DNA from: Klebsormidium nitens
Lineage: Eukaryota; Plantae; Klebsormidiophyceae
DNA: 51,459 nucleotides
Assembly (NCBI GenBank): GCA_000708835.1
Contig: DF237562.1
Coordinates: 1-51,459, forward strand
Direction: 5' to 3'
The position numbers were made by a program, and so were the translations under genes. This document shows positions 8,001-27,900 of the stretch, one piece after another. Within the stretch, counting starts at the first letter, position 1. Each line of letters opens with the position of its first letter. Below the pieces are notes generated by a model. That model was not told the DNA's origin. It did no database searches and saw only the letters and a list, made by a program, of their open reading frames with translations.

Positions 8001-11000
8001 CTGTTTTCGGGCACGTCAACCCTGCCTTTCAACGTCTCTTTGAACAAGTAAACGTCGGGGTTCTCATTGTGCAAAGTGTTGGTAAATCATCGTCAGGCTA
8101 CTCTCGATCCTCTGCAGACCCGGACCTCCGGCGCGCGCTCGAGCGCGCGGACTCAGCAGAGGCGCAGCTGGTGTTGGCGCTGGCGGTTTGCAACACGGTG
8201 GTACCTGTCCAGAAGCGGGGCGTGCGCAGCTTCAAGGTGGCGTCCCAAGACGAGCTGGCGTTCGTGAGCGCAGCGGCGGAGCTGGGGTTCACTCTGGCGA
8301 GCAGGGAGGGGCAGACGCTTGGTGAGGACGATGTTAAATTCTCCGTTTGATTGGAATCGAGGTCGAAACAAATGGAGGGCAATTGTCAAGCGTGACAGCG
8401 GACTGGGGACGGTAAGATCTCTGGGCGTTCAAGCAGGGAGGGACAGAAGCTAGGTGAGGCCGTTCCTCAATTGTGCATTGAGGGAATCGGACGTCTGTGA
8501 TTGCGGAACGACAACCAACTCGGCACGCTTTTAGATTCTGGGCGATCATGCAAGAAGGGACAGACGCTCGGTGAGGACAGTTTTCGCCTTGCGGATTGAA
8601 AAGACTGGACGTCAGTGCTTACGCACGACGATCGACTGGATCCAGCTTTTGAGCAGGAACGGGCGGACGCTCGTTCAGTGCGGATTCCGCGGGCAGTGAT
8701 CGGTGGTTTGTGAGTGGTTTGTGAGTGCTTTGTCTGAAAGGAGACACACGAGTCTCCGGGAGAACTTCGACCGTCAGAAGAATCTGAAGACCGTTCTGGG
8801 CAAGCAAGCTTCTTCCGAGCACGACCATTTTTCGGAGAGAGCGGTTTCTTTGCGAGGAAGCGAGACGGCCTTCGTAGACTGAACCCCATGTTAGCAAGGA
8901 TTCTCTTCTAAAGGAAAGATCCGACGCCTGGGTCTGAAGGAAGAAGTGTTCGCATCGTGAAGCTAACGTCAGCGACGCATGCAGCGCCAACCGCCGTTGC
9001 AATCCTGAGGCCTCCTTCTTTCGTTCGTTGGTTTTTATCTGGACTCTTCGTCGTTGTTTGACAGAGGGGACGCCCACCTCCTGGAGACGCTGGAGGTTTC
9101 GCTTGAGTGAAAGCAAAAGGTTAACTACAAGAACTTTCAACGTTTTTAGCTCCAAATACGAGCCTCCTATCTGTTTTTGACAGTTGTCGCGCTAGGTGAA
9201 GAGAGTGCCCGCTTCGAGCTGCTTGAGACGCTGGAGTTTTCGCCGGAGCGCAAGCGCATGAGCGTGGTGGTGCGCGAGCGGGCGTCGGGGCGGCTGAAGC
9301 TGTACACCAAAGGCGCGGACGAGACCATCTTCCCCAGGCTGCGAACAGGTTAAGCAACGGTGCTGTTGTTTCCAGATGTCGACCAGTACGGGTGCCTCAG
9401 CGGCTGTAGCGGAGTTTTTGAGTGTACATACGCATTTCGTCGGCGGAGGGTCTGCAGCTTTTACAGATGGACCGGTCGCTGATACAGAACATGATTCGCG
9501 GACCTCCTCTGGCGATGCGGGTTTGTCAAAGGCGAAACCCCTCCGCAATCAGGTCCTCAGTGACACGGGGTTTGGCTTTCTTGCGAACTGAAACTACGGA
9601 AAGACGTTCCTCACCCGGCCATATAACAGCTGTTTTTAAAAATTGCCGACCCTCAACTGTGTGCGACTTCCTGAGAGTTGCCCATCTGCTTAAAAGCCCA
9701 TTCTTCTACTGGAGCACTTGCAAAAGTCATACGACGAAAGTGCACAGTCATTGAGCGGTATTACACGAGGTAGCGTGGTAGCTTGGTAAGTCGAGGTAAG
9801 CCTCGGTAGCTCGGTAAGCCTCGATAGCTCCAGTAACTTGCCGAAATTTGGCGTAAGTCCTGTCCCTACCGCAACTCACCGGGCTCACCGCATCGTGGTT
9901 GGTGCGGCAAGCGGGGTAAGCACGGCAGTTTCCTGCCTGGAAAAACGTCAAGCTACCGCACTGTACCGCGCCCCATGTAACTTGCGGTAGCTCGATAGCT
10001 CCAAAAGCTGGAGCTACTACGACTTACCGCGCCCATGTGACTTGGCTCATTGACCTTGTTTGAACAGGTGAGGAGACGGCCTCGACGGCCGCGCTGCTGG
10101 AGGACTATGCGCGGCATGGACTGCGAACCATGGTGGTGGCGGCGCGCAGCGTTGACGAGGACGAGTATGCGGAGTGGGCGGGCAAAATGCGAGAGGCACG
10201 GGTGGCGCTCCAAGACAGAGACGTGAGTGCTTTTTACTTCACAGCTTGTTTGAAGCAGCCTGCCGCTTTCAGTGGAGACCTTAGTGTAGGTATCCGGTTC
10301 GCTGCTAAGTGACATTCAACCAGAGAAGGTGACACACAAACCGGCACAATGCGCGGACAATGCTGTATTTGGGGCCGATTGAAAGTTTCAGGTGGAGAGG
10401 AAGGTCGTGGGAGAGATTTGCGAAGTATGGGAAGCAGTGGGGGTGACTGAGAGAAACAAGGCTGGGGGCGTAAGTTCCGGCTTAGAGAAGATCTTTCCTG
10501 CTCTACTTTCTTTGACGGGCATCGCGAACCGTGCCGACCGAGTCGTCTATGACGAGCGATCTTTCACTTTCCGCGCTCTTCCACTTTCGATCACGTCAGA
10601 CTTGCAGAACACCGGACGCTGATGAAATTTGCATCTGCTTCGGTGAACCAGTTTCGACGTGCGTGGACTTAAGCGCAATTTGAGCCGCTCACAAAGCACC
10701 AAGTCTCAATGCGCTGGTTCGTCCTGCTTCAGGAGCGGACGGCGGAGGTGGCTTCGCTGTTGGAGACGCGGCTCGAGCTGCTGGGGTGCACTGCGATCGA
10801 GGACAAGTTGCAAGAGGGCGTGCCGGAAACCATTGCCCTGCTGCGGCGCGCGGGGATCCGGTTCTTCATGCTCACGGGAGACCGCCATTCTACTGCCGTG
10901 CAGATCGCCAAGGCGTGTGGGCTGGCTGGCTCAGGTGAAGATGCGAAACTTCGCCGCATGTTTGCTCCTTTTGCAGAGAGCGTTTGTAAGGGCAAGTGGA

Positions 11001-14000
11001 ACGATGGGGAAGAAGCGTGCATCCTGTTGGCAGGCTCACTGAGATAGAGATAGAAGGAGAGGGGATATTAGGCTTCCTTCTCGGGTGCTGTGCTTCAGAT
11101 TCCTCGACCCTTGTAAGTTGTTGGGGTCTTCGATGGGTTAGCAAGGACTGTGGGTTTGCAGGCTCCGATTAGCTATGCTTAGACGAAGGAAGAAGCGGAA
11201 GGACCACGGGGGGCTCTTGCGAGGCGATGCTGCATTCGGCTTCCCTAAGCTTCACTTCACTAAGAACACTTTCTAATATATATTCGGCTGCGGACGTCGC
11301 AATCTTCGAACGCGTTTCCGGGGTTGGCAGGCTCGATCAACATTGTCGATCGATCATGCTGATCCGACTCGACTTTACAAACATTGCAGGTTCTGCGCAT
11401 CAGATATTACGGGTACAGGGCACATCTCCGCACGAAGTGGGCGACAGCTTGCTGCGCATACTGTCCCTGCTTAAGGAAAACACCCGGGTAAGGCGCCGAG
11501 AAACCCTAATCCTAAAACACTGTTAGTTTCGACACTTAGGATCAGTAGCTTGATCCTGCGTGTCACTTGGCCTCAGTTGCTTGCACCCACTTTGTTCCGA
11601 TGATATGCAGACCAGGGCCGCTTTGTCCAAAGTAGACCGACTTCAACAGGCCGACGTCTGATTTAACGAGCGGCGCTCGTGCTCTACGCCGTCCGTCTCC
11701 TTCCGCTCTCCTTCTGTCCACGTCTGACCGCTACAAACGACCTTCATTGTCCAACAATAAAACAACAAAACCCTGAACTCGAGACGCCCAGAAGTTGTAT
11801 TCCCATGTTCAGTACGCCTATACATCCGTAGCAGGCAGCCATCTTTCAACATTGCTTCGAACTACCTTGTTCGTCCAACAATCAAATAATAAACTCCTGC
11901 AATCGAGCCGCCCAGAATCTGTATCTCCATTTTCACCACGCATCTACCTCCGTAGCGGGCACTCACCTTTTAACAATGCTGTCGCTGCAGGATCGGACGC
12001 TTCTGGTCGAGGGTTGGGTGTTGGACATCGCATTGCAGCACCACGCGGACGCTTTTGCGGACATTTGCCGCCTGGTCCGGACCGCCATCTTCTGCCGCGC
12101 GGCGCCCATCCAAAAAGCGCAGGTCCGTGAGAACGGTCCCTTCGGTAGAGACTTAGCATGGCTGCGTGGGTCACACGACGAGACTGCTAATTCTGTGGCT
12201 TCCCTTTGGACGCGAATTGGTTGCAGATCTGACGATAACCGACAACATAGAGGCTCTACCATCAAGTGAACCTATTTGCTGATGGTATGATGTCTGGGAA
12301 TCTGCAACCAACTCTGCAAACACCTCGCTTCGGGTCGCTGCTTATTGTTAGTTCTTTGACAACCGAAGTCCTTTTGAGTGGAAGAGGCAGTTGAAAACGG
12401 AGACACCTGTGTTCGCGCCGACGTGCAAGCTTTGTAGGATGCAAGAACCGCCCACCTGGCCTGTTCTTCGAATCGCGCCTTTAAGTAACAATTAGTCCGT
12501 GAAAGTCTAACTCGCAAATCTGTATTCCGGATCGGATTTCCGATAAAGACTAAACTCTACACACAAAATCCCCTTTTCGGCATGCTATTGTGCCGTCGTG
12601 AAGCGTTCTGTACGCAGACGCTGGTCATGAGACCCTGCGACGAACATAACAATCCCAAAGCCTTACAACGCTGGTTGCAGACAAACTTTTCAAAACGCTG
12701 AAAGAGCAAAACCCGAAACCAGAACCACTCGAAACTCTCCTTGCAGCTTGTTGCCGTCGTGAAGGGCTTCGGTGTACGTACGTTAGCGATCGGCGATGGC
12801 GCCAATGACGTGCGCATGATCCAGGAGGCCCACGTGGGGGTGGGAATCAGCGGAAGGGAGGGCCTGCAAGCGGCGCGCTCTGCCGACTACAGCATCGCCA
12901 GTGAGGCCCTCTGCTTTGAACTGACGGTTCGACATTTCTTGGAACCTGAGGGCTCATATGAGAGCGTCTAGAAGTGCCCTGCTAAGCTTTGAGCCCAGAC
13001 TCTTTCTGGATTTTGTCAACGCGTCGTTTGACTCTATAGTTTTGTCTCAGAAAAAGGGAATTGACCTGAACGTGGTTCCTTTTTGTGGTGGCCATCCCCG
13101 GCAAAGGGTCCGCCATGCTCAACGCAGACGATTTTCTCGATGCTGCTCATAGTTAGTCTCCGCTGGCAGCTGCTTCGGTCCGAATCTTGCGTACAGTCAC
13201 TACTGTAGAAGGAGCGTCAAAAGCGCTGCCGTGACGTGTCCATGGCTGTCCCGGTGGTTGCTTCTCGATGTCATTAGTCTAACGCTCTTGCTCCGGTTGG
13301 TTTTGGGCAGAGTTCCGGTACCTGGCCCGCCTGATCCTGGTTCACGGCCGTCACTCGTACCTCTGCACCGCTTTCGTCGCGCAGTACTCCATCTACAAGT
13401 CGCTCGCGCTCTGTTTTGTACAGATCATGTGAGCCTTTTCGATCCACTTTTCGCACGGTCGGAGTTCTACTTCGTCCCAATCGAAGCTTTTCTGCTCTTT
13501 GAACACGGGAGGAGTTCTTATCGACAAACTGAGATGCAGTCAGTGGATGGAGCACGCTAAGGCAGATTTCTGGTCCACTTGCTTCTGGTCCAGTTTGAAG
13601 GCCTCTTATCTTCCGCCGTCGTGCAAGCCTCAAGGCGGGCCTTCCCGAGGTCTAGCGTTTCCGGCCGTTCTCCGCTTTTTGAACACACGAAGCCAGCCCC
13701 TCACAACTCGTCACGAGCCTGCCTCATTTACTGCCACCCGTGCAAGAACAACTTCCTAACCCGACCGTCCCTTGTGCCCCTTCCTGACTCCCCGCCCCGT
13801 CTAACTCCAGCCCTGCTAACGTCACCCATCGTGACGTCACGCTTCGCTCCTTGCAGGTTCGCGTTCTTCTCCGGGGTTGCCGGGACGAGCCTGTTCAACT
13901 CGTTCAGCCTGACCACGTACAACGTGCTCGACACCAGCCTGCCCGTCCTGGCTTACGTCCTCAACCGGGACCTCGCTGACGTCACGGTGACGCAGCACCC

Positions 14001-15888
14001 GGAGCTCATGCAAGACGCCCAGCAGAGCAGGTGGGAAGGTTTTTGTATGGATTGCAGGATCGTGTTGACTGTCTCTGCGTACCGACTTCTTGCTCTGAGT
14101 TACCGTAGTATAAAGTGGTCTGACCGTTTCACGGCTCTATTACGATCAGTGTCGTAGACCTGGAACGTGAGGCTCGATAAGATTGTGCCTTTCAGCCAAA
14201 GCGACGGACAGCATGTAGAGACTGAAATGCATTGCTCAGCTTGAGACTGCCAAGGTGGTGAGGCGAGTTGAAAGCGTGTTTTGCGTGCGAGCCCGCTGCG
14301 CCTTCGCGTATAGTGCAGATCGTCGGGAGGGCTGTGATACCTTGCGGTTCCATAAGTAGCACTTGGAGCTCGTTCTTTTAGCGGAATCTCATCAATGCGG
14401 AAGCTCAGAATCGGAGCCCTCAAGCAGAGGAAGCGGCTCGACCAGAATCGGAGGCGGAAGTCTGAGCGAAACTGGAAAATTAGCCGTTATTTGCGGGCAG
14501 TCGTGGTACGGTGTTTCAAGCAGCGATCAGAGGCCAGTCTCGTCACGGCCCATAAAATCACAGCCCAGCACACCGCACATTACCGAGCTGCGCTCTCTCT
14601 CTTTCTGCGCAGGCTGCTGAGCATCGAGACATTCACGCACTGGTTCGCGCGCGCGCTCTTCCACGCTTGCGCGGTGGTCATGCTGACGTCAGGCGCCTAC
14701 TTCCTGACGGGCGCCAGTCTGGAGGAAGCGGCGCTGGCGGCCTTCTCCGCGTGCGTCTGGGTCGTCACTCTAGTTGTCGCCGTTGAGACCCAGTGAGCAC
14801 CGCAGATTGTTCCGTTGCTTTTTACGGAAGACTTAGGGTTAATATACTTGAGAGTTGTGTTTTGCTTGGGCTCGAGCGTCATCAGGGCCAGTAAAATGGT
14901 TGCCGTTTGGCCGTGTCAACACGTGTACTCTTCACCCGCAGATTCTCGGCTCACCTAATCAATTCAGCAGCTGACGTCCTCTCTAACACGAGCCTCGCTA
15001 ACGTTAGAGGCTCCATCCTTTCGCAGCTCCTTCACGGCCTACCAACACGTGGCGCTCTGGGGCACGGTGCTGACGTTCTACGGCGTCAGCCTGTTCGCAA
15101 GCGGGTACCTGTGGAGCGGTATGTACCGGGTGGTCGGGCGCATGCTGTTTAATCCTCGCTACGGGCTGCTCCAACTGGTGAGCGGCTCAGGAGTCCTGCT
15201 TTTGCTTTTGGCTTTGTTCCAACAAGGGAACCGTCATCATGTTTCTGATTGAGCGGTGAGAAGGGCTCGGCCTTTGTGTCCAAGACCAGTACTGTGGTCT
15301 ACCTGAAATTCGTTGCATTCGACCTGGATCTTCCAAAATCTTTGAAAAGGCTGTAGTCTTGCCAAGGACTTGCAAAAGGTGGGCCGCCTCTGCTAGACAA
15401 GAGTGCAGCTGTTTCTTGAAACGGTGTGAAATGTCAGGAGCGGGGTCGATTTTTTCCAGCGGGAGCCTTTCTTGTTCTCCGATCGTGCGACAGCGAGCCA
15501 CTGACATCTCGGATCGCCTTCTCGGGAAACTTTGGTGCGTTGTGCGTTGTCATGAGGTGCAATCCTTTTGGGGTTTCCGCGTTGGCATATGGGCCTGTCG
15601 CACTTTCGCAAGAGCTGCTTCATACGTTCAAGATACTCACACTCTGGCGAACCTGTTGTGCAGCTGATATGTGTGGTCAGCCTGGGGCCCATTCTGGTGA
15701 CCAAGTACTACCGCTTCTTCTACCACCCTAGCCTGAGTGACAAGCTCCTACAGCTGGAAAAAGAGAGGACTGACCCCGCGGACGCTCTTGCCGAGTCCGG
15801 GACCATGTACAGCCGGCTCCTGGGCACCTCCGCTTCGCAGAATGAGTTGAGTAGACAGCGGTTGATATCAGAAACTGAGCAGCTCTAG
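2034..15888 (+). CDS. ALA2: P4-type phospholipid-transporting ATPase (flippase), ALA2-like, 21 exons
   Basis: Exons 2034-2188, 2979-3192, 3664-3780, 4027-4122, 4572-4746, 5335-5501, 6115-6219, 6821-6918, 7617-7759, 8118-8321, 9184-9348, 10067-10222, 10733-10934, 11390-11487, 11991-12122, 12747-12900, 13311-13428, 13857-14030, 14613-14792, 15027-15177, 15664-15888. All introns are GT-AG and the frame is continuous. Motifs: [22 protein letters not shown] (P4-type DGET), [40 protein letters not shown]. Confidence 0.95.
6487..6546. repeat. Two-copy 35-bp tandem repeat in ALA2 intron 7
   Basis: ctcagttccgaaaagcaaaccccga at 6487 and ctcagttccgaaacgcaaaccccga at 6522. Confidence 0.85.
8283..8690 (+). 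repeat. Four degenerate tandem copies of the ALA2 exon 10 end plus splice donor
   Basis: gcagggaggggcagacgcttg|gtgagg (GT 8322), gcagggagggacagaagctag|gtgagg (8454), gaagggacagacgctcg|gtgagg (8571) and a decayed gcaggaacgggcggacgctcgttcag (about 8652-8678). Confidence 0.75.
9755..10046. repeat. Array of GGTAAGC/GGTAGC motifs in both orientations in ALA2 intron 11; possible non-autonomous DNA transposon
   Basis: Forward ggtag(c)/ggtaag(c) words at 9769-9830 and reverse ctaccgc/ctcaccg/cttaccgc words at 9865-10030. Flanked by TCATTGA at 9748-9754 and 10047-10053. No convincing TIR. Confidence 0.5.
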
Positions 15889-15899
15889 GTGTACGGTAA

Positions 15900-16700
15900 C
15901 TCGTCAACCTAACGGATAGATGTGACCCCGTATCATATGCTTGTGGTCCGAGCTGACAATTGTACTTTATTACGCAAAGCGCGCCCACCTGATAACGGAG
16001 GAGTGTATGACTAATGTTGGATTGATCGTGTCTCTCGGGTTTGGTCACTGAAGAGAACCCATGCGTTTGACCATACCGGGGAAGCAAAGATACTCAGGCT
16101 CTCCAATATGAGCACATGCCACATGATGGCGGCTACTTCTTATATTGAATAGCCCCGGGCCCTAGCTCAACTTGAAATTTGAAATGTATATAGATATGAC
16201 GTATGTAGTACGACATATAGTTATATGTCGTATATTGTCGCCAGCTAGGTGCCCAGTGCATGTGAGCTGCAATGGGGCCCCGGTCCGGGCGGGGATATCG
16301 AGCGGGCAACGGTGCATCATGCCACATGATCACTCATGCCAGCATACCGAATTGAGCATGACCAACGCATCATGTTAAGTCCATATCATGTGCACCAGCT
16401 GGCATGCATTTGTGAACGTGCTAGAAACTGATCTGCAGCCGACCGTCGCTTTCTTCAAACTGCACTGTGGCATACACAACGTATTTGCATGTGTAAGCTT
16501 GAGTTGCTATAGACGAAGACATAAGGGACGGCCAACCTTTACGGATACTATCGAGCACTTGTGCAGGCAAGCATACCGGGTACTACAACCTTTAAGCATT
16601 CTAAGCGCAGGCCGGCTCTTAGTATTAGCACAACAGGTCACTTATTCGCTGAGTTGCATGGTTGAGGGAGTCCACTACCTCATGCACAGGACTAGCTTGC
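15900..16700. other. Palindrome-rich intergenic island 1
   Basis: Dense CATG/TGCA/ATAT/CCGG words. 11-bp hairpin tacgacatata-gt-tatatgtcgta at 16209-16232. The motif ccggg(c)cctagctca is shared with the island near 29223. Confidence 0.5.
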
Positions 16701-16870
16701 GCCAGACGGATCATATGTGGTTACAATGATCCACCTGATCTCCAACCTAGGACTTGAATTGGGGGCCGTTCCGACTGAAATAGATTTACTGTGACCATCA
16801 AAACATACCCAAAAGGTCACAAGAGAAACAAACAATAAGGAGGAAATACAGCATAACCTAAGCGTGATCA

Positions 16871-16918
16871 TGGAGCTGACAGGACTCGAACCTGCATCTC
16901 TCAGCAAACTGCGAATCG
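16871..16918 (-). tRNA. Orphan (distal) tRNA-Ala-like 3' half: extended stem strand, variable loop, T-arm and acceptor 3' strand
   Basis: Minus strand reads CGAT-T-CGCAGTTTGCTGA-GAGAT-GCAGG-TTCGAGT-CCTGT-CAGCTCC-A. It has a TTCGA T-loop, U70 and A73, and no encoded CCA. No adjacent 5' half was found. Confidence 0.7.
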
Positions 16919-17676
16919 GGGCTTGATTGTGCTCCTTGTGTGAGCTTCTCTCTTGGTATAGAACAGCACAGGATAACAGATTGATGTGTATGTCTTGCTC
17001 AAACACCAACTGGTCTGGCTCATGTCAAGCTTTCACTGCATATTGCTAGGAAAACAATGAACCAGCTTGTGTGCTTTGACTAAGTTCCTGTTTCTCGGTG
17101 TTCGAGAACTAGTGTTCATAATTCTGTCACAATTCTGTTATCTCCCGCAAACTTGGACCAACTTTGCCGTTGATACCAATGGCGACTTTGAGATTCGCCT
17201 GAAAGTTTCCTTTCTGTTACTTGCTGAAAGAGCACTGGTCTGCATCTGCTGCTGACCTTGCCAATTTCTGTTTGTTGGTACATCTGGCAAGATCTGTATT
17301 CCTGCCTTCGAGCGACATTTTTGGTGCATTTTGAAGCAGTCTTGCTTCAGCTCTGGTTGCCATCGTTTTGTGCACCCCTTGACGTTGTTCTCAACAAGGT
17401 GACGATTCAGTCTGGACAGCTGAAAGGCTTGCGACGCATGGAATGAGCAATCAGAAACCTCAACAGACACCAACAAACTCGAAATACCAAAAAGGACTCA
17501 AGAACGAGGAACACTACTACACGAAAATCAAGGACACAAAAAACACAACATATCAAAGGGACGCAGACTGGGTACACATACGACCACCAGAAAAAGCTTA
17601 AGACCAAACAACTTAGAACCACACACAGCAAGCGACCAACAAACCTCCCTACTGTCCAGACGCTCTGTGAACATTT

Positions 17677-18405
17677 TGGAGCTGGCGGGGTTCGAACCCG
17701 CATCTCTCAGCAACTGCGCATCGTGTCTGGTTGCTGAACCGCCACTGCAGGCAGGATAATTGGAACAAAGCTCAGCTAGCATGAGCATCTGCTTCCTTAA
17801 TCAGAGCGAAAGGAAGACCCCGGCCGGAGCGCAGGGGTCATCCAGCCCTAGCCATCAATGTTGGCATGAAGCTCGTCAGCGACACCACCAAATTGAGTCC
17901 ATGGCAATCTTCGGCAGTCAAGTCGGTAAGCCAATGCCTTTGCGGGATCGCTCTTGTCATGCGCCGCACAGATTTGCATGCGCATTGGCCACTGACAACG
18001 TGCTGAGTCAGCACCTGCAGACATGGAGATGGACTGCAGGGATCATATGCAACGGTGGGATAGGGTCGGGCCAAACCGTAGAAGCATGCAGATTTGCAGA
18101 TTGCTGGCAGGTAGCAAGTTTAGCTATTTCCAGTCGTTTTGCCTGGGTTGTACACACCCTTCGGCGACTCGGTTGTGACCATCGGGATCAAAGGCACGGT
18201 AGCATGTCATTGCTAGCGTGTTCTCCCCATCAGGTGAGCCATTTGAGCGGAAGCTGCCAGAATTCATGTCGCAATCTGCATTGTTCAACATACGGAAAGG
18301 TCGACCATCACCACAAGCGGAGCCTCTTGGGCAGTCTGGCAGGCCGAAAGATGTAGCCGTCACGATCGCAGTTGCTTGGCGCTTTACCAATTAAGCTACA
18401 GCCCC
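17677..18405 (-). ncRNA. 729-nt tRNA-Ala-mimic RNA: the 5' and 3' ends form a complete tRNA body and the anticodon loop is replaced by a about 635-nt insert
   Basis: 5' half 18405-18361: GGGGCTG-TA-GCTT-AATTGGTA-AAGC-G-CCA-AGCAACTGCG-ATCGTG. 3' half 17725-17677: CACGAT-G-CGCAGTTGCT-GA-GAGAT-GCGGG-TTCGAAC-CCCGC-CAGCTCC-A. This gives a 7-bp acceptor with G3:U70, a 4-bp D-stem, a 5-bp T-stem and a 10+6-bp closing helix. U8, A14, A15:U48, G18, G19, A21, U54, U55, C56 and A58 are all present. Confidence 0.75.
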
Positions 18406-19034
18406 TTTACTTGGAACGAACATATAGAATAATCAAGAAGCAAAATGCAGCAAAAAGAATACAAGACCTTTCAGAAAGCGACTAAAATAACGGGCCTACT
18501 CAAGATCAATCAAACTCACCCTATCCAGAGTAAACAATTGAGATAAAACGTCCTTGGTCAGGGAACAAGCTGGGGGTGTCCCGGAAAACCCACAGAAACA
18601 AACAGGCTCATCCAACCCCGTAGAGTACCCGGCAGTCCATTAATGAACAACCACTCTGCAAAAGCAACACAACAAACCGTCACAACACTCCCTTAAAGCG
18701 GCGCCAGGTTCCCAGCTGGGACACCCCGTCGGATGTGCTGCAGTTGGCAAGGCGAAATGTTGAAATGTTGTCAAACACTAGGTTGTGGATGACTTGTCAG
18801 GTCCGGTCTGCAAGTATGAAGAAAGGCAGATTGCGAGTCAGAACAACTTTGGCTAAAATAAGTAAACCATGAATCATAAGTGAACCATGAATCGATGAGT
18901 GGATTGATTTATTCGATTCAGCCACGAGTACCGATACCCCAAGCAATGATCGATGTGAGCCATGCAATCTGACGAAAAGTGGAAGGAAGAAGAGCGATTG
19001 CTGCCAAGTGAACAGACAAGAAAAAAAAGCACAC

Positions 19035-19100
19035 TCAGGGCTTTTAAAAAAGCTTCATCAACAAACCGACTCTGAGTAGGGATCATAGAGAATGCATCAT
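19035..19100 (-). ncRNA. Candidate box C/D snoRNA (orphan, no terminal stem)
   Basis: C-like ATGATGC (19100-19094), D' CAGA (19074-19071), C' TGATGA (19060-19055), D CTGA (19038-19035). Its 3' end aagccCTGAgtg matches that of the 19747-19834 snoRNA. Confidence 0.45.
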
Positions 19101-19217
19101 CCGATAGAAGCTCACAGATGAGAATGGAGTTAGAGATATCAGGTTCCCAAGCCCAAACAAAACTGCCTCCAACCTTGCATCCACGAACCATGCGAGAGAA
19201 ACACGTGAGAGTGAAGA

Positions 19218-19297
19218 TGGGCTCAGAAGGATCCATTGGTTGTATGCATCACAGCTGCACTCATATAAACTGCTAAAGCAGAGTTCATCATGGCCCA
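19218..19297 (-). ncRNA. Box C/D snoRNA, snR41/snoR41Y/U62-like, predicted guide for the 18S Am541-equivalent
   Basis: 5-bp terminal stem TGGGC/GCCCA, box C ATGATGA (19291-19285), C'-like GTGATGC and box D CTGA (19226-19223). The guide CCAATGGATCCT is complementary to plant-type 18S AGGAUCCAUUGG. The D+5 rule lands on the A after GAGG (yeast Am541). Confidence 0.85.
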
Positions 19298-19432
19298 CTG
19301 CACATTTACAGTACCAAAAAAGCTTTCTGTAAAGACTGGCTGGTGCTATTGAAGAACCACCTGACACAAGTCCTGACCGTATCTCACAAAAACAAAAATA
19401 TCACAAACATGCACACAGTATTAGCTCTTGAT

Positions 19433-19507
19433 AGCCCTCAGCGTCTCGTTGTTTCCATGTGCTCAAGGAGCGGTCAGGAGTTTATTTGTTAATACCATCA
19501 CCGGGCC
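19433..19507 (-). ncRNA. Box C/D snoRNA candidate, target not recognised
   Basis: Terminal stem GGCCC/GGGCT, C-like GTGATGG (19501-19495), D' CTGA (19477-19474) and D CTGA (19441-19438). Length 75 nt, lying between two well-supported snoRNAs. Confidence 0.6.
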
Positions 19508-19746
19508 AGATCGCAATACTGGAAAATGCAATCCGTTACAAGTCTGCTCAAACGCAATGCATGTCACATGAGAACATTGTGACTGAAAGTTGAAACAACA
19601 GGTCATGAAAGGACGTACACTTCATCTGCCTGAACCCAATACTCTGTGACTTTTAGAGGTGTATCACTTGCAAAAGATCGGCACTTTGAGCACCAATGAC
19701 TAACATGCTCTACGACTCCAGATGAAAGGTTTACTGCCAAAAACAA

Positions 19747-19834
19747 CGCTCACTCAGGGCTTCTTCGAAGCAATTGAGTATCCACAGTGGTGTTCAGAGG
19801 ATTGACAGATTCTAAAATCTCATCATAGTGAGCG
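19747..19834 (-). ncRNA. Box C/D snoRNA, snoR14/SNORD110-like, predicted guide for the 18S U1231 (yeast numbering; human Um1288) equivalent
   Basis: Perfect 7-bp terminal stem CGCTCAC/GTGAGCG, box C ATGATGA (19826-19820), D' CTGA (19797-19794) and D CTGA (19757-19754). The 14-nt guide AATCTGTCAATCCT is complementary to 18S AGGAUUGACAGAUU. D'+5 lands on the first U. Confidence 0.9.
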
Positions 19835-20169
19835 CATGGATTTGGCAAAAGTTCCAACAAAGGAGTTGTTCAGAGAAGTCTACAAGCAGACAATCCAGAG
19901 CAGCCGACCCTCATCAGTAGTGTCCCTACGAACAAGTTGAGGGTCGAGGCATCCAACAGATTAGTTGTGTTTCCAGAACAGGAGTTTCAGCACTTCAGGT
20001 CATCAAGCCGAGGCTGCAGCAACCGCCAGGAGAGCCAGGAGACGCGGACTCAAGACGAAATACCTTAACATGGCAGAAATGCAATGCCATGTCAACTTTT
20101 ACTTGCTGAACATCCATCTCAAACACCATTTTTGCCACATCCTGAAGTGTTGAGAGGACCATCGCTCAC

Positions 20170-20251
20170 CTGCAAATGCAAGACCCAAATGGCATCCGCA
20201 CCAGAGCTCCCGGGGCTGCCAGGAAGAACAGGCAACACTCCCTGGCCCATC
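20170..20251 (-). ncRNA. Probable internal exon of a spliced non-coding snoRNA host transcript
   Basis: Minus-strand acceptor tttattgcag| at 20252 and donor |gtgagc at 20169. A further donor |gtgagtg lies near 20779. No recognisable protein in any frame. Confidence 0.4.
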
Positions 20252-20271
20252 CTGCAATAAATAGAAATCTC

Positions 20272-20330
20272 TCAGTTCCAAGCACAAGTGTTGGAGTTAC
20301 GAACCAGCTTCCTAATCCACTGCTCATCTT
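20272..20330 (-). ncRNA. Weak box C/D snoRNA candidate with an 11-nt complement to 25S rRNA near the A-loop
   Basis: C-like AAGATGA (20330-20324) and D CTGA (20275-20272). TCCAACACTTG (20295-20285) is complementary to plant 25S CAAGUGUUGGA, but it is not directly adjacent to a canonical D box. Confidence 0.35.
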
Positions 20331-21476
20331 TGATAAAGGCCCAAGCGGCAGTGAAAGCAGGAGGGGAAGATAGCGAAGAGTGCTTGGAAAGCAGACTCCG
20401 AAGAAAGAAGAAGTGTCACCGTTACCAAAAGAAGTGAATTTCTTTTGGTACCAGCAGGGGAAAACCCCCTGCAGCCCTTTCTTTCATCCAAGAGTACGAA
20501 GGAGCAGACGCTTAGGCTAAACATTGATGAAAACCTGCGCTTCAAATGGTACAATGCAGGAGCTGACCTGATCTAGTGTCATCGTTCACATGATTATGAG
20601 CGAAAATCTATGAACAAGAGAAGGCATCCAGGTTTGGTTACACCAACTCCCTGAACATGAGCTTGACATGACTTGGTGGCAAGTGAGCAGATGTAGGACG
20701 GGCTGACAACTTGTTCCAACCTCAAGCATATCATGGTGCATTTGCAACAGCATAAGATGAGAATGACAAATCTCACTCACCTTCAAACTGCTCTTGCAGC
20801 CAAACAGCTCATTAGCTAACCAATCGGACATGAATACCACTTGATGGTTCCGCAGGGAAGCTGAACTGTACTAATCTGACAGTGAAAGCTCAGTGTTGCA
20901 TAGCTTCAAATAGCGCCATAGCGCCAATGCAGTGGCATTGGCAATTTGGCATCGACGAAGTCCAGGCTAGGACCTATAACCGAAGTTCGAACCTCCTTCC
21001 TCAGGGAGGAAGTTCCTGCTTGAAGTTGTAAGTTGCAAGGTTGAAGGACTCAGGAGTTCGAATGGTCTTCAAATCTACGGATACCTATGATAGGGGCGAA
21101 AATACAGTAGAGGCTTTTTGAGCCGTCGATGCAAGTCCTCTTCTGATCGGACGGCCTCAGAAAGGGTGAAGCTTTGCTCTAAACTACCGTACTGAACAGA
21201 TTCATCCTCCTCCCGGCCTAGTTTCGTCTCCTCGGAATGCTTATAGGTTGCCGCGGTTTTGTCAAACCTGTAAAGCGCGTCGAAATTTCGAAGCAAACGA
21301 TGCTCCTTGACCACTTTCGTTAAGGGGCTCCCACAAGTTCAAGGTGCCGCTTTGAAGCTAACCCGGACGAGATTCTAAACCCGCATGCTTCTATCGATTC
21401 GGACCAGGGGATCGCATCCCGGCTAATACAAATTCAGGCGGTAATTCCTCAACGAACAAGGAAGGAGACGGGCAGA

Positions 21477-21484
21477 TAGGGTTT
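21477..21484 (-). promoter_or_regulatory. Telo-box (AAACCCTA) in the divergent snoRNA-host/HDA15 promoter
   Basis: tagggttt on the plus strand. A second copy is at 21869-21876. Confidence 0.5.
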
Positions 21485-21868
21485 TCTTCCTTGCCGAACA
21501 CCATTTTCGGAAGGAAGGGCTCCTGACGAGCTGTCTTTCCTGCCCAAAGAGTCCCTTTCTGTCTTGGAAGCCCCTGCCACTGCTGGCAAAGGACTTGTGC
21601 CTTGTATCAGCAACCTTTACAACCTCAACAATAGGTTGTGGTTGTTTCCTCCTGTGTGCTTTTGTTCACAGCTTGTCCGTTACCACTCAGGATAGCTGGC
21701 AGAAATTTTGAAAAAATTTCTCCCTGATCCTTCGCTGAGTTGCTCCACAGAGGAACTTGGCAGGGTGTTCTTCTGGTGCCTCTGCAGCTCTGAAAAATCT
21801 TACACGCCGTTTGGAGGCCTGTACAGACCCAGGCGATTTTGCTCACCAATTTTCGCGCACCCGAAAAG

Positions 21869-21942: not shown

Positions 21943-24900
21943 ATGGAGGATGATTCAGCTGCAGGGCAAGCGGATCTGCTCTTCCCGGGGATGCCGAGCA
22001 GCGGGGATGACCCCTCTGACGATGACCATGATCTGACTGCTGCAAACTCAGAGGAAGAGGACTCAGAGGATGAGGGCCTGGATGAGGAGGAGGACGAGCT
22101 GTCAGCTCATAATGTCAGGAAGGCCCTCAAGAGGCCCCGCGAGGAGTCCTCAGGGGACGAGGATGAAGAGGGGCCCGGTAATGATCTGCTGGACATGCCC
22201 CCTCGGAAGAGGGGCCTGGATGACATCATGAGGGAGTTTGGGGAGGACGATGGCCTGGATGATGATGAGGATGATGACAGCGACGAGGATGACGAGGAGT
22301 GGACCCCCTGGGGCAAGCCCTCCTGGGTCTGCGTCAACTGCACTTGCTCCACCGGGGATGAGTACACCTTCTGCTCGGTAAGCGTGTGGTTAAGACTCAG
22401 CATCTCTTTGGAGGCATGTTACCTGCGGAAGCGAGTTTTCGAGGACAGGAAGACTCGCCTGAGGACACTGCCTTGCAAGAGCCTTCATGGCACCTCAGAT
22501 GGAGTTCTGCTTGCTTTCAATGCTTGCATACCAGCTCAAAGTTCCAATAACTGCTGTGACACTGCAATGTGTCAAGACAGAAAATGATCTGGGGCAATGC
22601 TGCGTGTGACAGCTGAAAAGGTGCAAGGCTAGGGTTCCTTGTGGTCCTTCTTCCAATGGGTTGTCTGCCTTTTCTTTCCAGCTGTATTAGGGTCTGTGGT
22701 GCAGTGACAACTGTTGAGTTCTGCTGTCAATCCTATCGCTGCTGAGCTGATAATCTATTCTACACGAAATTGACTGTAACACACTTTTCTCCATGCATTT
22801 GCCCCTTCACCCCTCCCAAGGAACCCCAGACACTCCCTGAGCTGCAAGGGGACAGCTCAGCATTGTCAGATATACGATCTACATTTCGAGCCTTGCAGCT
22901 GTCTTTGATCATTGCTGTGCAAGGGATCATCTGCATCAAGAACTTCCTGCTTTGGGGATCTTCACCAACCACGATCGCTGTCTGCAGTTCTGTGGAGAGC
23001 ACCGTCGGTCGGGCATCCTTCAGCGGGGCTTCATGGCCAGCCCTGACATCCCCGGGGACGCTGGGGTGGCTGAAGATGGCCCCCTGTATGCGGCAGAACC
23101 CGTGCAGCTGTCTGAGGAGGAGCTACGAGCGGCTACTGCCATTGGAACTGACGACAAGATGCTCCTGCATTTTGAGGTGAGCCCCCCCTAGCCCCCCTGG
23201 GGCTTAACAATTGTTGTGTCCGTTGCCTGGGGCTCTTCTATCCTCTTGACAGGGTCTTCTTTATAAGACAACGCTCAACTTTTGTGTAATTTTCTTTTCC
23301 CCCAACTTCATGTTTTGCAATTGGGGGCCTGGACTGCCACCTTCCTTGCCCATCGACTCATCCAAAAACCAGGCACTTCTTTAGACGTCTAACTCTGGCA
23401 TCTTGCTTTCCAGGGGAAGCCAAGCCCCCACCCGGAGAGGCCCGATCGGCTGAGGGCAATTGTCGCAGGGCTTGTTCATGCTGGTGAGTTAAGCAGTCCA
23501 GAAAGCCTTTGAAAAGCCTCCTAAAAGCCCCCATGAAAAGCCCCCCTTAAAAAGCCCCCTTGAAAAGCCCCCTTGAAAAGTCCCCCCTGGAAGTTGCCTT
23601 CTCTTCTGGGATGGATGTTTGTCTGGATTAGTGTGGACATGCTGGTCTCATTTTAGGCTTTCTGATTTATAGTTTATAAATTCAAACGTCTTTTTATGAC
23701 AGCTGTCCCCGTTCTAATCTACACATCCTGACTTTGCATCTTCGTTCCAATGGTGTGCAGGCCTGTTCCCCAACCGCTGCGTCCCCTTCCCCACAAGAGA
23801 AGCTGAACAATCGGCCATTGAGTCGGTCAGTTTCTACCCCTCTTTTCGCCCCCAACTATTTTGCCGGCAATAGGTTTCCACACTGCCAAGTAGCTTCCTG
23901 CGTGAGCATTACGTACTGATGATTGGGGCCTGGTCTTTTAAACTTGACATTGATTGCAGAGTAAGCAGGATTGTCCTGTTGTTTGACGCTTCTCAAAGTT
24001 GCCCCCACATTGTCATGCAGGTTCACACAAGTCATCATGTTGATGAAGTGGAGTTGACTGCCGGCTGTGACCTCAAGTAAGACATTTGCTCATAAGCCCG
24101 AGACGCTCCCATGCTCGTGGGAAGCTGGGGCAGCTGTTCAAGGTAGTGTAAGATAGAGCAGGTGTCTCAATCATCATTGAAGATACATACAGAGGTGGTA
24201 ACCTGCCCTACAACAGTGATTTGCAACCAGTCATTTTGCCCCGCACAACTGACCAGGATGTAGCTTGTCCTTCTGAAGGGCAAGCCTCAGAAGTTTGCTA
24301 AGCTCTGCTGGCAGCAATCAATTCTGGAGCCAATGTCTGCTGATATTCCTCAAGCCTTGACAGCTGTCCTATATTCCCGTAGGTACTCCACCTCGTACAC
24401 TTATGCCCCAAGCCTTGACAGCTGTCCTTCACTTCTGCAGGTACTTCACCTCAGACACGTACGCCAATGCCAACACCTGCCAGGCCGCCCGGCTCGCAGC
24501 AGGGATCTCGCTCGACATGGCAGCTGCTATTGCCTCCGGGAAGCTCAAGAACGGAGTAGCGGTCGTCCGCCCCCCTGGTCATCACGCAGAGTCGGAGGCC
24601 ATCATGGGCTTCTGCCTGCACAATAACGCGGCGGTCGCTGCCAAGGCCGCGCAGGCAGCCGGAGCGAAGAAGATCCTCATTGTGGACTGGGTGAGAACTC
24701 TCACTTGGATTGGCTGAAGTGTCCTGGTTGGTCGTGACCACTTCGAACATCCCATCTGCACTGAGATCCCCGCCGTAGATTGAAGGCTTTGTGTCAGCCA
24801 GATGTTCAGGAAATGATCATACTTTGTGTTGAGCGACATGTGCCCTTTCCTAAAGAGCTTTTCTCAAAACAACCTTTCCGTCTTTGCAGGACGTCCATCA

Positions 24901-27900
24901 CGGAAACGGCACCCAGGAGATCTTTGAAGGCGATCCTTCGGTGAGGAGCTTGCCCCTTATCCAAGTTGCTGAGTTCGATCCCGTTTCCGTTGTTGCTGGA
25001 TTCATTTGCTGCCCTCAAGGTTTGCAGCCGGAGTGCGCTTGCTGTGATCGGCACAACAAGAGGTCTGTACCTATCTATGAACAGCTTCGGATCGTTTTCA
25101 TTGCGCTGAAGACCGCTCCAAATCAAAGATTCATCTTCTATGCAGGTGCTGTACGTTTCTTTGCACCGTCACGAGGCGGGCCACTTCTACCCGGGCACTG
25201 GGGGTGTCTACGAAGTAGGGTCGGGCCAAGGGGCGGGCTACTCGGTTAACATACCATGGCCGTGTGGAAATATCGGGGATTCAGATTACATTGCGGCCTT
25301 CACGCGCATCATTCTACCCCTTGGTGAGCCCTTTGAGAGCTTTTTATTAAGAACACGTCAAGAAGTGTTTGCTGTGCTGGGCTGAACATGTTTGGCTTCT
25401 CGTTGCGTGAAAGGCCGTTCGTGTATGTACTTAGCCCTGTCGGTTGTATCTTGATTCGATCTTTCAAGAGTTAAGGTCTGCTGGAAGTGGGCAGTAAAAA
25501 GTTGTTCTGAACGCACCCTCAGGTCGGTCTCCCATCTGGGATCGTACTTCCGCTAATCACTAGCATCCATCTTCGATTGCAGCTTACCAGTTTGCCCCGG
25601 ACATGACCATCATCTCAGCAGGCTTTGACGCGGCTGCGGGCGATCCCCTGGGGGGATGTCAAGTGAGTCCCTTCCGTCCAAGCCCTGTCAACCTATGTCA
25701 TCTTTTCCTGAAGCGCTTTCAACTGGTCACGGGAGTCAGGCCTTTGTCTTGAGCACCTGCTTTCTCCCTTCCAATTGTTTCTTCAAATTATGGTGGTCGG
25801 GTTTCATGGTGGTCGGTATGGCTCGTCTCATTCGTTCACAACTGGCACAGATGTGACTCTCGACCTGAAGTGTCCTTTGAAGGACAAAGTGCTGATTGAT
25901 CTCTCCCCTTCCCGCAGGTGTCGCCAGCTGGCTATGCGCATATGACTTCCCTCTTGAAGCCCCTGGCCCAAGGCCGGATGCTCATCGTGCTCGAGGGGGG
26001 CTACAACCTCCGCTCCATCTCGTCATCTTTAGCGGCATGCACTCAGGTGAGCTTGACTTCTGGATGTTCTAGCAATCGCTTTCAGCCGGGCTGAGACCGA
26101 GTCGCAAGGGATTGTCGTGCAAGCAGCCCCTACTCTCTTCTAAGCTTACTTCAGCCAGGTCGTTGCCTGCATTTCTGCTATTGTTGTTGTTGTGACTCGG
26201 ATCTGGATCTGAGTCCGGGATGAGACTCCGAAGTCTCTCAAACATCTTTCTGCTACGTGAATGTCGAGTCTGCAGTGCCTTCTGTCTTGTTCGATATCAG
26301 TGCCCCTCTTGACAGCTGTCCTGCTTCTTGTTCTGTCTGGTTCGATATGGAGTTTTCACCCGCCCCCTCCTCCCCGCAGGTTCTGTTGGGCGAGGCCCCC
26401 CCCGCGCTGCCGGCCGGGCTCCAGCCTAGCGAGGCGGGGCTGGCCGTGATTGCGGAGGTGAGCGCAGTGCAGGCGCGCTACTGGACGGTGCTGGGCCACC
26501 AGGAGATCCAGGTGCACCCCATCATGTCCGGGGAGGAGGAGGACGAGCTCGACTCGCTGCAAGACGCCAAGGCGCTCCCGCGGCTCACCAGCAACGGGGA
26601 CCATGCCGGTGAGTGCCGCCCCCGAGCTCGTGTGCTGAGATTTGTTTGACGGATTTTGGCTGGTGGGTTTTGTTGACGGGTTTGGGGTGACGAGTTGCGG
26701 TTATGAACGGGAAGACAGCGGGAAGAGAGCAGTACGAAGGGGCCCAGAAAGGACTAGCTTTTGTTGCAAAGCCCGAAAGAAGCTAAGGAGCCAGTTCCTA
26801 AAAGCCAAGCCGGAGTACTTTGCCCCACTGCTATGCCGGAGTATACTCCCCTCGGCTTCGGTACGAAGTATCTCCCCAGCTTCTATATAAAAACCGCTTG
26901 TATGAACGCGGCCTTTTACAATCCCCTAACGAAAGTACGTCAGAAGCTTCACGTGGCCTGTGATACTGGCAGTCTTTTCTTTCGGCACCGCACTGCTAGC
27001 TCGCACACGCCCCAGCCCCAAGCCCGGCCACTCACCCCCCTCTCTGCTTTCCCTCCCCAGGTGACGCTGGGGAGGAGGCCCTGGGGCCGCACAAATATTG
27101 GCTACCCCCGTCTGCCCCGTCTAGCCTCCCCTCTCCTAGCTACCCCCCCGGAGCAGCATCCCCTCACAGCTTCACGCGCATCCCTTCTCCACGTCACCCA
27201 AGCTTGGAGCCCCTCCCTTCCGAGCCCGTCAGCGTCCCCACTTTCACCCAACCGGGACCCCCCCGCCCGCAACCAAACCCCCTGCCGCCAGCTCATCGCC
27301 CGCCGCAAGTCACGGGGATGCCGCCCCCCAGCTACGTGGCATCCCCTATACACCAACCGTTCTACTACCCGTCCCCCGCGCATCCCTCGAGTTACCACCA
27401 TCCCTCCCCCGCCCATCCTTCCACATATCACCACCCGTCCCCCAGCAGGGCCGCCATGCTGACGTCACCCCAGCACCCGTCGCAGCACGGGGCGGCCCCC
27501 GCGCACCACCCCTCCCCCGCTTACCAGAACCACCCGCAGTCCATTTTCCACCCCCCCACCGCGTCGCCGCAGCACCATTGTGTACCATATGTAACATCTA
27601 CGGTCCACTTGAAAGCGAGCGCCCCTACGGGGCCCCCTACTGTGGCGCCTCTCATCCCCCGCCCGTTGAACCCTCAGCAAAAGCGGCCCGAAGTTGCACG
27701 GTCCCCTTCGGTGCAGCCCTCTTCAACTTCTCAGCCCGCGGAAACGATGAAAAGATCAGCCTCGGTTACGCGTCTCTCGCAAGCCTCCCCGCCTTCAGAC
27801 ATAGCACTCCCCGGCCCTGCCCTTGCGCAGCCGCCAGCTGTCGTTTCAGCGCAGCCGTCAATTGTTCTTTCAGCCCAGCCGTCAACAGTCCCCGCAGAGC

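Follow-up and report, generated by a model that had tools for sequence, protein, structure and literature searches.

An orphan second 3' half downstream of a tRNA-Ala-shaped clasp in Klebsormidium nitens: intact fold and possible role as a spare closing strand

In bacterial genomic islands, direct repeats of the 3' ends of tRNA or tmRNA flank the integrated element. In plants, dicistronic tRNA-snoRNA genes, as described in 2003 by Kruszka et al., are said to be processed by RNase Z. The mascRNA and menRNA of the MALAT1 and MEN-beta lncRNAs are substrates of RNase P and RNase Z without any decoding role (PMC8457004, PMC11693755); they are contiguous mimics of about 60 nt, with one 5' strand and one 3' strand each. 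In archaea, the pieces of split and tri-split tRNAs are transcribed separately and joined in trans by the splicing endonuclease at a bulge-helix-bulge, the products being decoding tRNAs. Such pieces can be shared: in Nanoarchaeum equitans two 5' halves rely on one 3' tRNA-Glu half, and the pieces of Caldivirga maquilingensis are swappable (PMC4033280).

The locus compared here with these systems is located in contig DF237562.1 of Klebsormidium nitens; the window is the whole stretch of DNA analysed, i.e., 51,459 nt. It contains a tRNA-Ala-shaped clasp; where a tRNA has its anticodon arm, the clasp has a helix of at least 16 bp opening into 639 nt (the cargo). About 800 bases past the clasp lies a second 3' half, the spacing between the two 3' ends being 806 nt. 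The 3' half that closes the clasp is called proximal and the other one distal. An initial annotation had located the second copy, and the search confirmed it at exactly that place, on the minus strand. The coordinates of the features are collected in Table 1.

Table 1. Features of the clasp locus and of its neighbourhood, in window coordinates.
Feature	Position	Strand	Characteristics
P4-type phospholipid ATPase exons	about 10600-15888	plus	end near 15888
Distal (second) 3' half	16871..16918	minus	48 nt; no encoded CCA; long-helix 3' strand, 4-nt variable loop, T-arm GCAGG/TTCGAGT/CCTGT, acceptor 3' strand CAGCTCC, discriminator A
Spacer between the 3' halves	16919..17676	minus	758 nt
Proximal 3' half	17723..17677	minus	47 nt; closes 729-nt clasp; T-arm GCGGG/TTCGAAC/CCCGC
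Cargo inside the proximal closure	17724..18362	minus	639 nt, structured, without T4+ run
5' half (sole one in the window)	18363..18405	minus	acceptor 5' strand GGGGCTG (G3 pairs U70), full D-arm
Candidate intron	18409..18519	minus	111 nt; AGG|GTGAGT donor, pyrimidine tract, CCAAG acceptor; sequence signals only
Box C/D snoRNA-like unit	19223..19291	minus	6-bp terminal stem; snoR41-like (plant), 33 bits vs. Rfam gathering score 40
Second box C/D snoRNA-like unit	19754..19826	minus	8-bp terminal stem
HDA15-like class II deacetylase	21943-27900	plus	acidic N-terminus, RanBP2-type zinc-finger-like motif

The two 3' halves are identical at 41 of the 47 aligned bases, the distal copy having in addition one extra T. 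A degenerate 30-mer search of the window retrieves two sites only, i.e., both 3' halves, for 0 expected. With a covariance model built from both 3' halves and run on the window with filters off, they score 78.4 and 78.1 bits; the next-best match, with a score of 9.4 bits, corresponds to the 5' half in antisense. The long-helix 3' strand of the 3' halves reads CGAT-N-CGCAGTTGCT. All the elements that had been listed as kept in the distal copy are found there: the CGAT.CGCAG / TTGCTGA strand, GAGAT, the TTCGA loop core and CAGCTCCA. The homology begins at the long-helix base and ends at the discriminator base. Thus the copy is real, it has kept its fold elements and still complements the 5' half, and its borders coincide with the functional ones. 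The distal block is an intact orphan 3' half, paralogous to the proximal one that closes the clasp.

Outside these borders the flanks do not align, as had been noticed: anchored extension on either side of both 3' halves scores no better than shuffled sequence. The one exception mentioned at that time, TTATCCTG, is indeed present 5' of both 3' halves (17759-17752 and 16976-16969), but out of register (28 and 50 nt from the block). As a shared 8-mer is expected at about 4% in such flanks, it was rejected as a conserved element. Both TTATCCTG motifs lie in pyrimidine-rich, AG-ending (acceptor-like) tracts of the minus strand (17745-17759 and 16944-16976), located 21 nt (proximal) and about 25-32 nt (distal) before the 3'-half block. 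A plain neutral DNA duplicate is unlikely, because with 87% identity between the copies the flanks should be just as similar.

The two copies differ as follows: (i) the bulged base of the long helix is G in the proximal copy and T in the distal one; (ii) the long helix of the distal copy has an extra bulged T; (iii) pair 51:63 is G-C in the proximal copy and A-U in the distal one; (iv) pair 49:65 is G-C in the proximal copy and G-U in the distal one; (v) T-loop positions 59 and 60 differ. The difference reported between the T-stems, GCGGG/CCCGC vs. GCAGG/CCTGT, is accurate and comprises the swap at 51:63 plus the G-U at 49:65. T54, T55, C56, R57, A58, the pair G53:C61, U70 (the partner of G3) and A73 are unchanged in the distal copy. 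The same holds for all the bases pairing with the 5' half, for both helix mismatches and for the variable loop of 4 nt. When checked by script, neither copy has a broken pair among 32, the six substitutions and the indel being all fold-compatible. Substitutions affect none of the 22 inter-half positions vs. 5 of the 17 T-arm positions.

It must be kept in mind that the 51:63 swap corresponds to two CpG transitions, and that the CpG observed/expected ratio of the surrounding DNA is 0.53-0.61. The «compensatory» swap is thus weaker evidence than it appears. The proposal that selection acts on the structure of both copies is retained in part: the intact fold and the unchanged inter-half positions speak for it, whereas the CpG nature of the swap weakens it, and so does the fact that a recently orphaned paralogue would be fold-compatible as well. 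Fold-compatible differences between paralogous halves are no proof of present-day function.

A neutral test was carried out by random mutation of the proximal copy, an outcome being considered as intact when all pairs and the T-loop core are kept. The simulation was repeated with weighted CpG transitions, because the 51:63 swap consists of two such transitions in CpG-depleted DNA. In these tests, which are post hoc and mutually dependent, six substitutions leave an intact fold in 0.4-1% of the runs at uniform rates and in 1.6-2.8% with CpG transitions weighted 5- to 20-fold; when only four changes are assigned to the distal copy, the intact outcome is obtained in 5-9% of the runs; the absence of any substitution in the 22 positions pairing with the shared 5' strand is obtained in 0.4-1.7%. 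That the change pattern goes beyond chance is suggested by these values, though not decisively. Twenty-two frozen inter-half bases together with a changing T-arm are the pattern that would be expected if both 3' strands fit one 5' strand.

The long-helix strand of the 5' half is complementary to both 3' halves. With stringent as well as permissive scoring, no second 5' half or relic of it is found in 15900-21600, nor elsewhere in the window. Across the window, the distal block has neither a 5' half of its own (acceptor 5' strand plus D-arm) nor another partner. Co-folding of the 5' half yields acceptor stem, long helix and T-arm with either 3' half, at -50.9 kcal/mol for the proximal and -43.7 kcal/mol for the distal one. 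The proposed pairing of the distal block with the 5' half at 18405 holds in that a complete fold is predicted, in which the G3:U70 acceptor, A73, the T-arm with its universal loop core and the long helix are all formed; it has to be qualified in that the proximal closure is the stronger one. The minimum-energy fold of the 735-nt proximal unit retains the clasp, with z = -3.75 for the whole clasp.

No homology was found between cargo and spacer. An ORF of 198 codons runs antisense through the cargo (17760-18356, plus strand); it has no Pfam domain, no similar protein was retrieved by the word search, and it is probably not a gene.

The T-arm energy is -5.6 kcal/mol for the distal copy vs. -8.2 kcal/mol for the proximal one. 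The preferred structure of the distal block alone is a 13-bp non-tRNA hairpin (-11.4 kcal/mol), in which the helix strand pairs with the T-arm. The proximal block alone retains its T-arm and forms a GCUG/CAGC minihelix. Selection for an alternative hairpin specific to the distal copy was rejected, comparable hairpins being obtained in 12-24% of random mutants.

The first 240 nt or so of the spacer (17440-17676, minus strand) are strikingly GU-rich and contain runs of T5, T6, T4 and T5, all of them at most 190 nt from the proximal 3' end. The fifth run of the spacer is a T4 at 17054, and two further T4 runs are located 3' of the distal half. The initial annotation was right about the presence of several T4-T6 runs between the 3' halves and about the 1535-nt span from the 5' half to the end of the distal half. 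It was also right in considering that Pol III would be stopped there: given the T-runs of the spacer, Pol III could not make the long form, which would thus need Pol II. The GU-rich zone (17440-17676) resembles a termination or 3'-end zone and is AC-rich and UTR-like on the plus strand. In the spacer, neither a structure signal (z = -1.09) nor a Pfam domain nor coding potential was detected; the exact look-up of a spacer ORF gave no match.

An 846-nt stretch of the minus strand (17596-18441), which covers the whole clasp, contains no T4+ run, vs. about one per 110 nt in the upstream host. The probability of this absence is 0.002 on the host composition and 0.18-0.23 on that of the clasp itself; as a Pol III signal it was rejected as too weak.

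When a 1541-nt RNA is folded, the predicted probability of pairing between the acceptor 5' strand and the distal strand is 0.65. The optimal structure is chimeric; if the proximal clasp is imposed, 2.2 of 520 kcal/mol are lost, an amount that is uninformative as a thermodynamic preference between the two closures. According to these models, thermodynamics neither forbids nor favours the long form.

The window has a eukaryotic appearance and few long ORFs. About 6 kb between the ATPase and deacetylase genes are occupied by a candidate non-coding host gene on the minus strand. The last ATPase exon retrieved no relative in a search by single exons, whose length filter hides full-length proteins. 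For the HDAC exon, the best relative in a large HMMER search is a transcript with 63% identity and no contig; the matches of the follow-up word search with the HDAC are dominated by animal HDAC6. The two snoRNA-like units are both located upstream of the clasp, in the same orientation, and no such unit is found beyond the clasp. Strong splice donors occur on the minus strand at 20780, 20169 and 18519. The candidate intron ends 4 nt before the 5' half, and the spliced RNA would carry a 4-nt leader. If this intron is real, the clasp would open the last exon of the host gene.

Nothing was found by metagenome pattern scans with the 3'-half and 5'-half patterns, nor by a pattern scan of viral contigs. 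The match obtained by the genome-contig scan (groundwater Peregrinibacteria L001, 6427-6500, plus strand) was rejected as a relative since it is an ordinary tRNA; its first 25 nt are identical to the 5' half of the clasp, by coincidence of the tRNA consensus. The literature search on tRNA-like RNAs in Klebsormidium retrieved no paper.

The reading that is tentatively preferred, as the most plausible of those considered although it falls short of being probable, is that selection keeps the distal block as a second strand able to close the clasp with the single 5' half, serving a long isoform, a fail-safe or a pairing in trans. It is proposed because (i) the inter-half positions are frozen, (ii) the T-arm is changing yet compensated, and (iii) the borders are sharp. 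In this scheme, a Pol II transcript hosting the snoRNAs would have the clasp at the beginning of its last exon. Since the proximal 3' strand is made before the distal one, it would normally be the partner of the 5' strand, and a 729-nt tRNA-ended RNA would then be freed by RNase P and RNase Z. If transcription continues beyond the GU/T-rich stretch with the proximal closure unformed or uncut, the distal strand would close the acceptor stem and the long helix and bring its own T-arm, leading to the 1535-nt form or to a fail-safe second cut. We infer transcription through the distal block, cleavage at 16871 and any biological use.

The components of this reading do not all have the same weight. 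The version in cis, i.e., a 1535-nt isoform or a fail-safe cut site, is doubtful when taken separately. Trans pairing with a similar 5' half elsewhere is a sub-variant that may take the rest of the weight of the preferred reading. It is rather unlikely that a single exon offers one tRNA 5' strand to two alternative 3' strands with the choice of the partner setting the RNase Z cut. That one transcript gives, by alternative closure, tRNA-ended RNAs of 729 nt and 1535 nt, the first nested in the second, is conceivable and to be held with the same reserve.

Several points count against a spare strand: (i) transcription reaches the proximal strand first, its pairing is the stronger one, and a cut at this place removes the 5' half; (ii) the distal T-arm is the weaker one and the free distal block prefers a hairpin that is not tRNA-like; (iii) the spacer lacks a structure signal and has five T-runs; (iv) past the clasp, there is no snoRNA-like unit that would indicate a continuing transcript; (v) the «compensatory» pair amounts to two CpG transitions, the four-change case gives 5-9% and the statistics are post hoc.

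It is also quite possible that the distal block is the young remnant of a tandem second clasp: two full units would both have functioned until their cargos and trailers were no longer recognisably similar, a recent deletion would have taken the second 5' half, and the function would be gone. A unit of 729 nt followed by a short spacer would account for most of the 806 nt that separate the 3' ends, and the weaker distal T-arm, the misfolding of the free block and the unstructured spacer all agree with a loss of function. Differences between paralogues that were once functional are fold-compatible by construction, with no need for present-day selection. This explanation nevertheless requires a clean deletion, as 15900-21600 contains no trace of a second 5' half. 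The orphan must also be young, its 47 nt having no disruptive change despite the regional CpG decay. Finally, the helix of an independent unit could co-vary, yet the distal copy matches the proximal one at 14 of 14 helix bases and at the position of the bulge, while 5 of 17 T-arm positions have changed; the remnant explanation therefore needs a helix that is constrained in sequence.

A functionless short-patch duplication is improbable. The 3' end, i.e., about 48 nt, would have been copied by an event of recombination or integration type (att-like, or RNA-templated repair) and would then have drifted. An intact gene followed by a distant direct repeat of its 3' ~48 nt, ending at the last base of the RNA, is what such an event would produce, and the sharp borders would be explained without selection. 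On the contrary, the 758-nt interval contains no integrase, no transposase, no terminal repeats and no coding potential; there is no match in viral contigs, and the copy has neither the CCA nor the A-tail expected of an RNA-derived copy. Moreover, drift must yield six fold-compatible changes, with P about 0.004-0.03. To our knowledge, no att-like mechanism of this kind has been described for a streptophyte nuclear genome.

A DNA-level B-box, i.e., a TFIIIC-binding site acting as an extra Pol III promoter element or as a chromatin boundary, is very improbable: the distal T-arm does have the perfect consensus GGTTCGAGTCC, which the minus strand of the 51 kb contains nowhere outside the two 3' halves, but about 11 nt suffice for a B-box, which leaves unexplained the unchanged acceptor strand, the variable loop, the 14-nt helix strand and the compensated T-stem.

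With regard to the known systems, the distal block fails the defining tests of a tRNA, a tmRNA, an archaeal split tRNA and an att duplicate. ARAGORN detects 0 tRNA genes in the window; the anticodon arm is absent and the distal block is a 3' half only. ARAGORN detects no tmRNA or tag either. The Rfam tmRNA family (RF00023) gives a hit to each of the two 3' halves, restricted to the 3' T-arm and acceptor, with 16.4 and 8.6 bits vs. a gathering score of 47. The likeness to tmRNA, including its two-piece forms, consists in an alanine-type G3:U70 acceptor and a T-arm closing a large non-tRNA domain. The clasp differs by its full D-arm, its eukaryotic nuclear context with introns and the sub-threshold scores.

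The att repeats of bacteria also have a distant copy, on the same strand, of the 3' ~45-50 nt that ends at the last base of the RNA; here, however, the interval is devoid of integrase or element and the genome is eukaryotic. The plant tRNA-snoRNA genes have in common with this locus a tRNA-type fold and box C/D snoRNAs on one precursor, cut by the tRNA end enzymes. They contain a normal tRNA-Gly and are transcribed by Pol III, whereas the present host is a candidate spliced transcript of Pol II type, with a split fold lacking an anticodon and a duplicated 3' strand.

Among lncRNA modules, mascRNA and menRNA are likewise tRNA-shaped folds within a Pol II non-coding transcript (PMC8457004, PMC11693755). 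The clasp differs from mascRNA since it is split around 639 nt and has a full D-arm, alanine identity marks and two candidate 3' strands, its cleavage being a prediction. By analogy, it would work most like the mascRNA-type modules of Pol II lncRNAs.

As regards the archaeal split and tri-split tRNAs, the likeness is that halves are combinatorial, one half having alternative partners (PMC4033280). In the clasp, on the contrary, the halves are in cis on one strand, the 5' half is the shared one, an anticodon is lacking and the RNA between the halves would be kept. The clasp has a plain stem with one bulged base, in which no bulge-helix-bulge can be seen.

We know of no description of an «alternative closure» mechanism for any tRNA-like module. 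If the distal block is a remnant, it documents how tRNA-framed units turn over, a tandem duplication being followed by the loss of one half. If, on the other hand, the spare strand serves, (i) a tRNA-shaped processing module could be closed in more than one way; (ii) RNA folding, and not splicing or polyadenylation, would choose between the two products of one exon; (iii) the frozen inter-half pairs and the free T-stem would provide the clearest sign, from within the locus, of selection on the tRNA frame for pairing. If the cis reading is true, the locus would be a eukaryotic cis counterpart of the shared halves found in archaeal split tRNAs.
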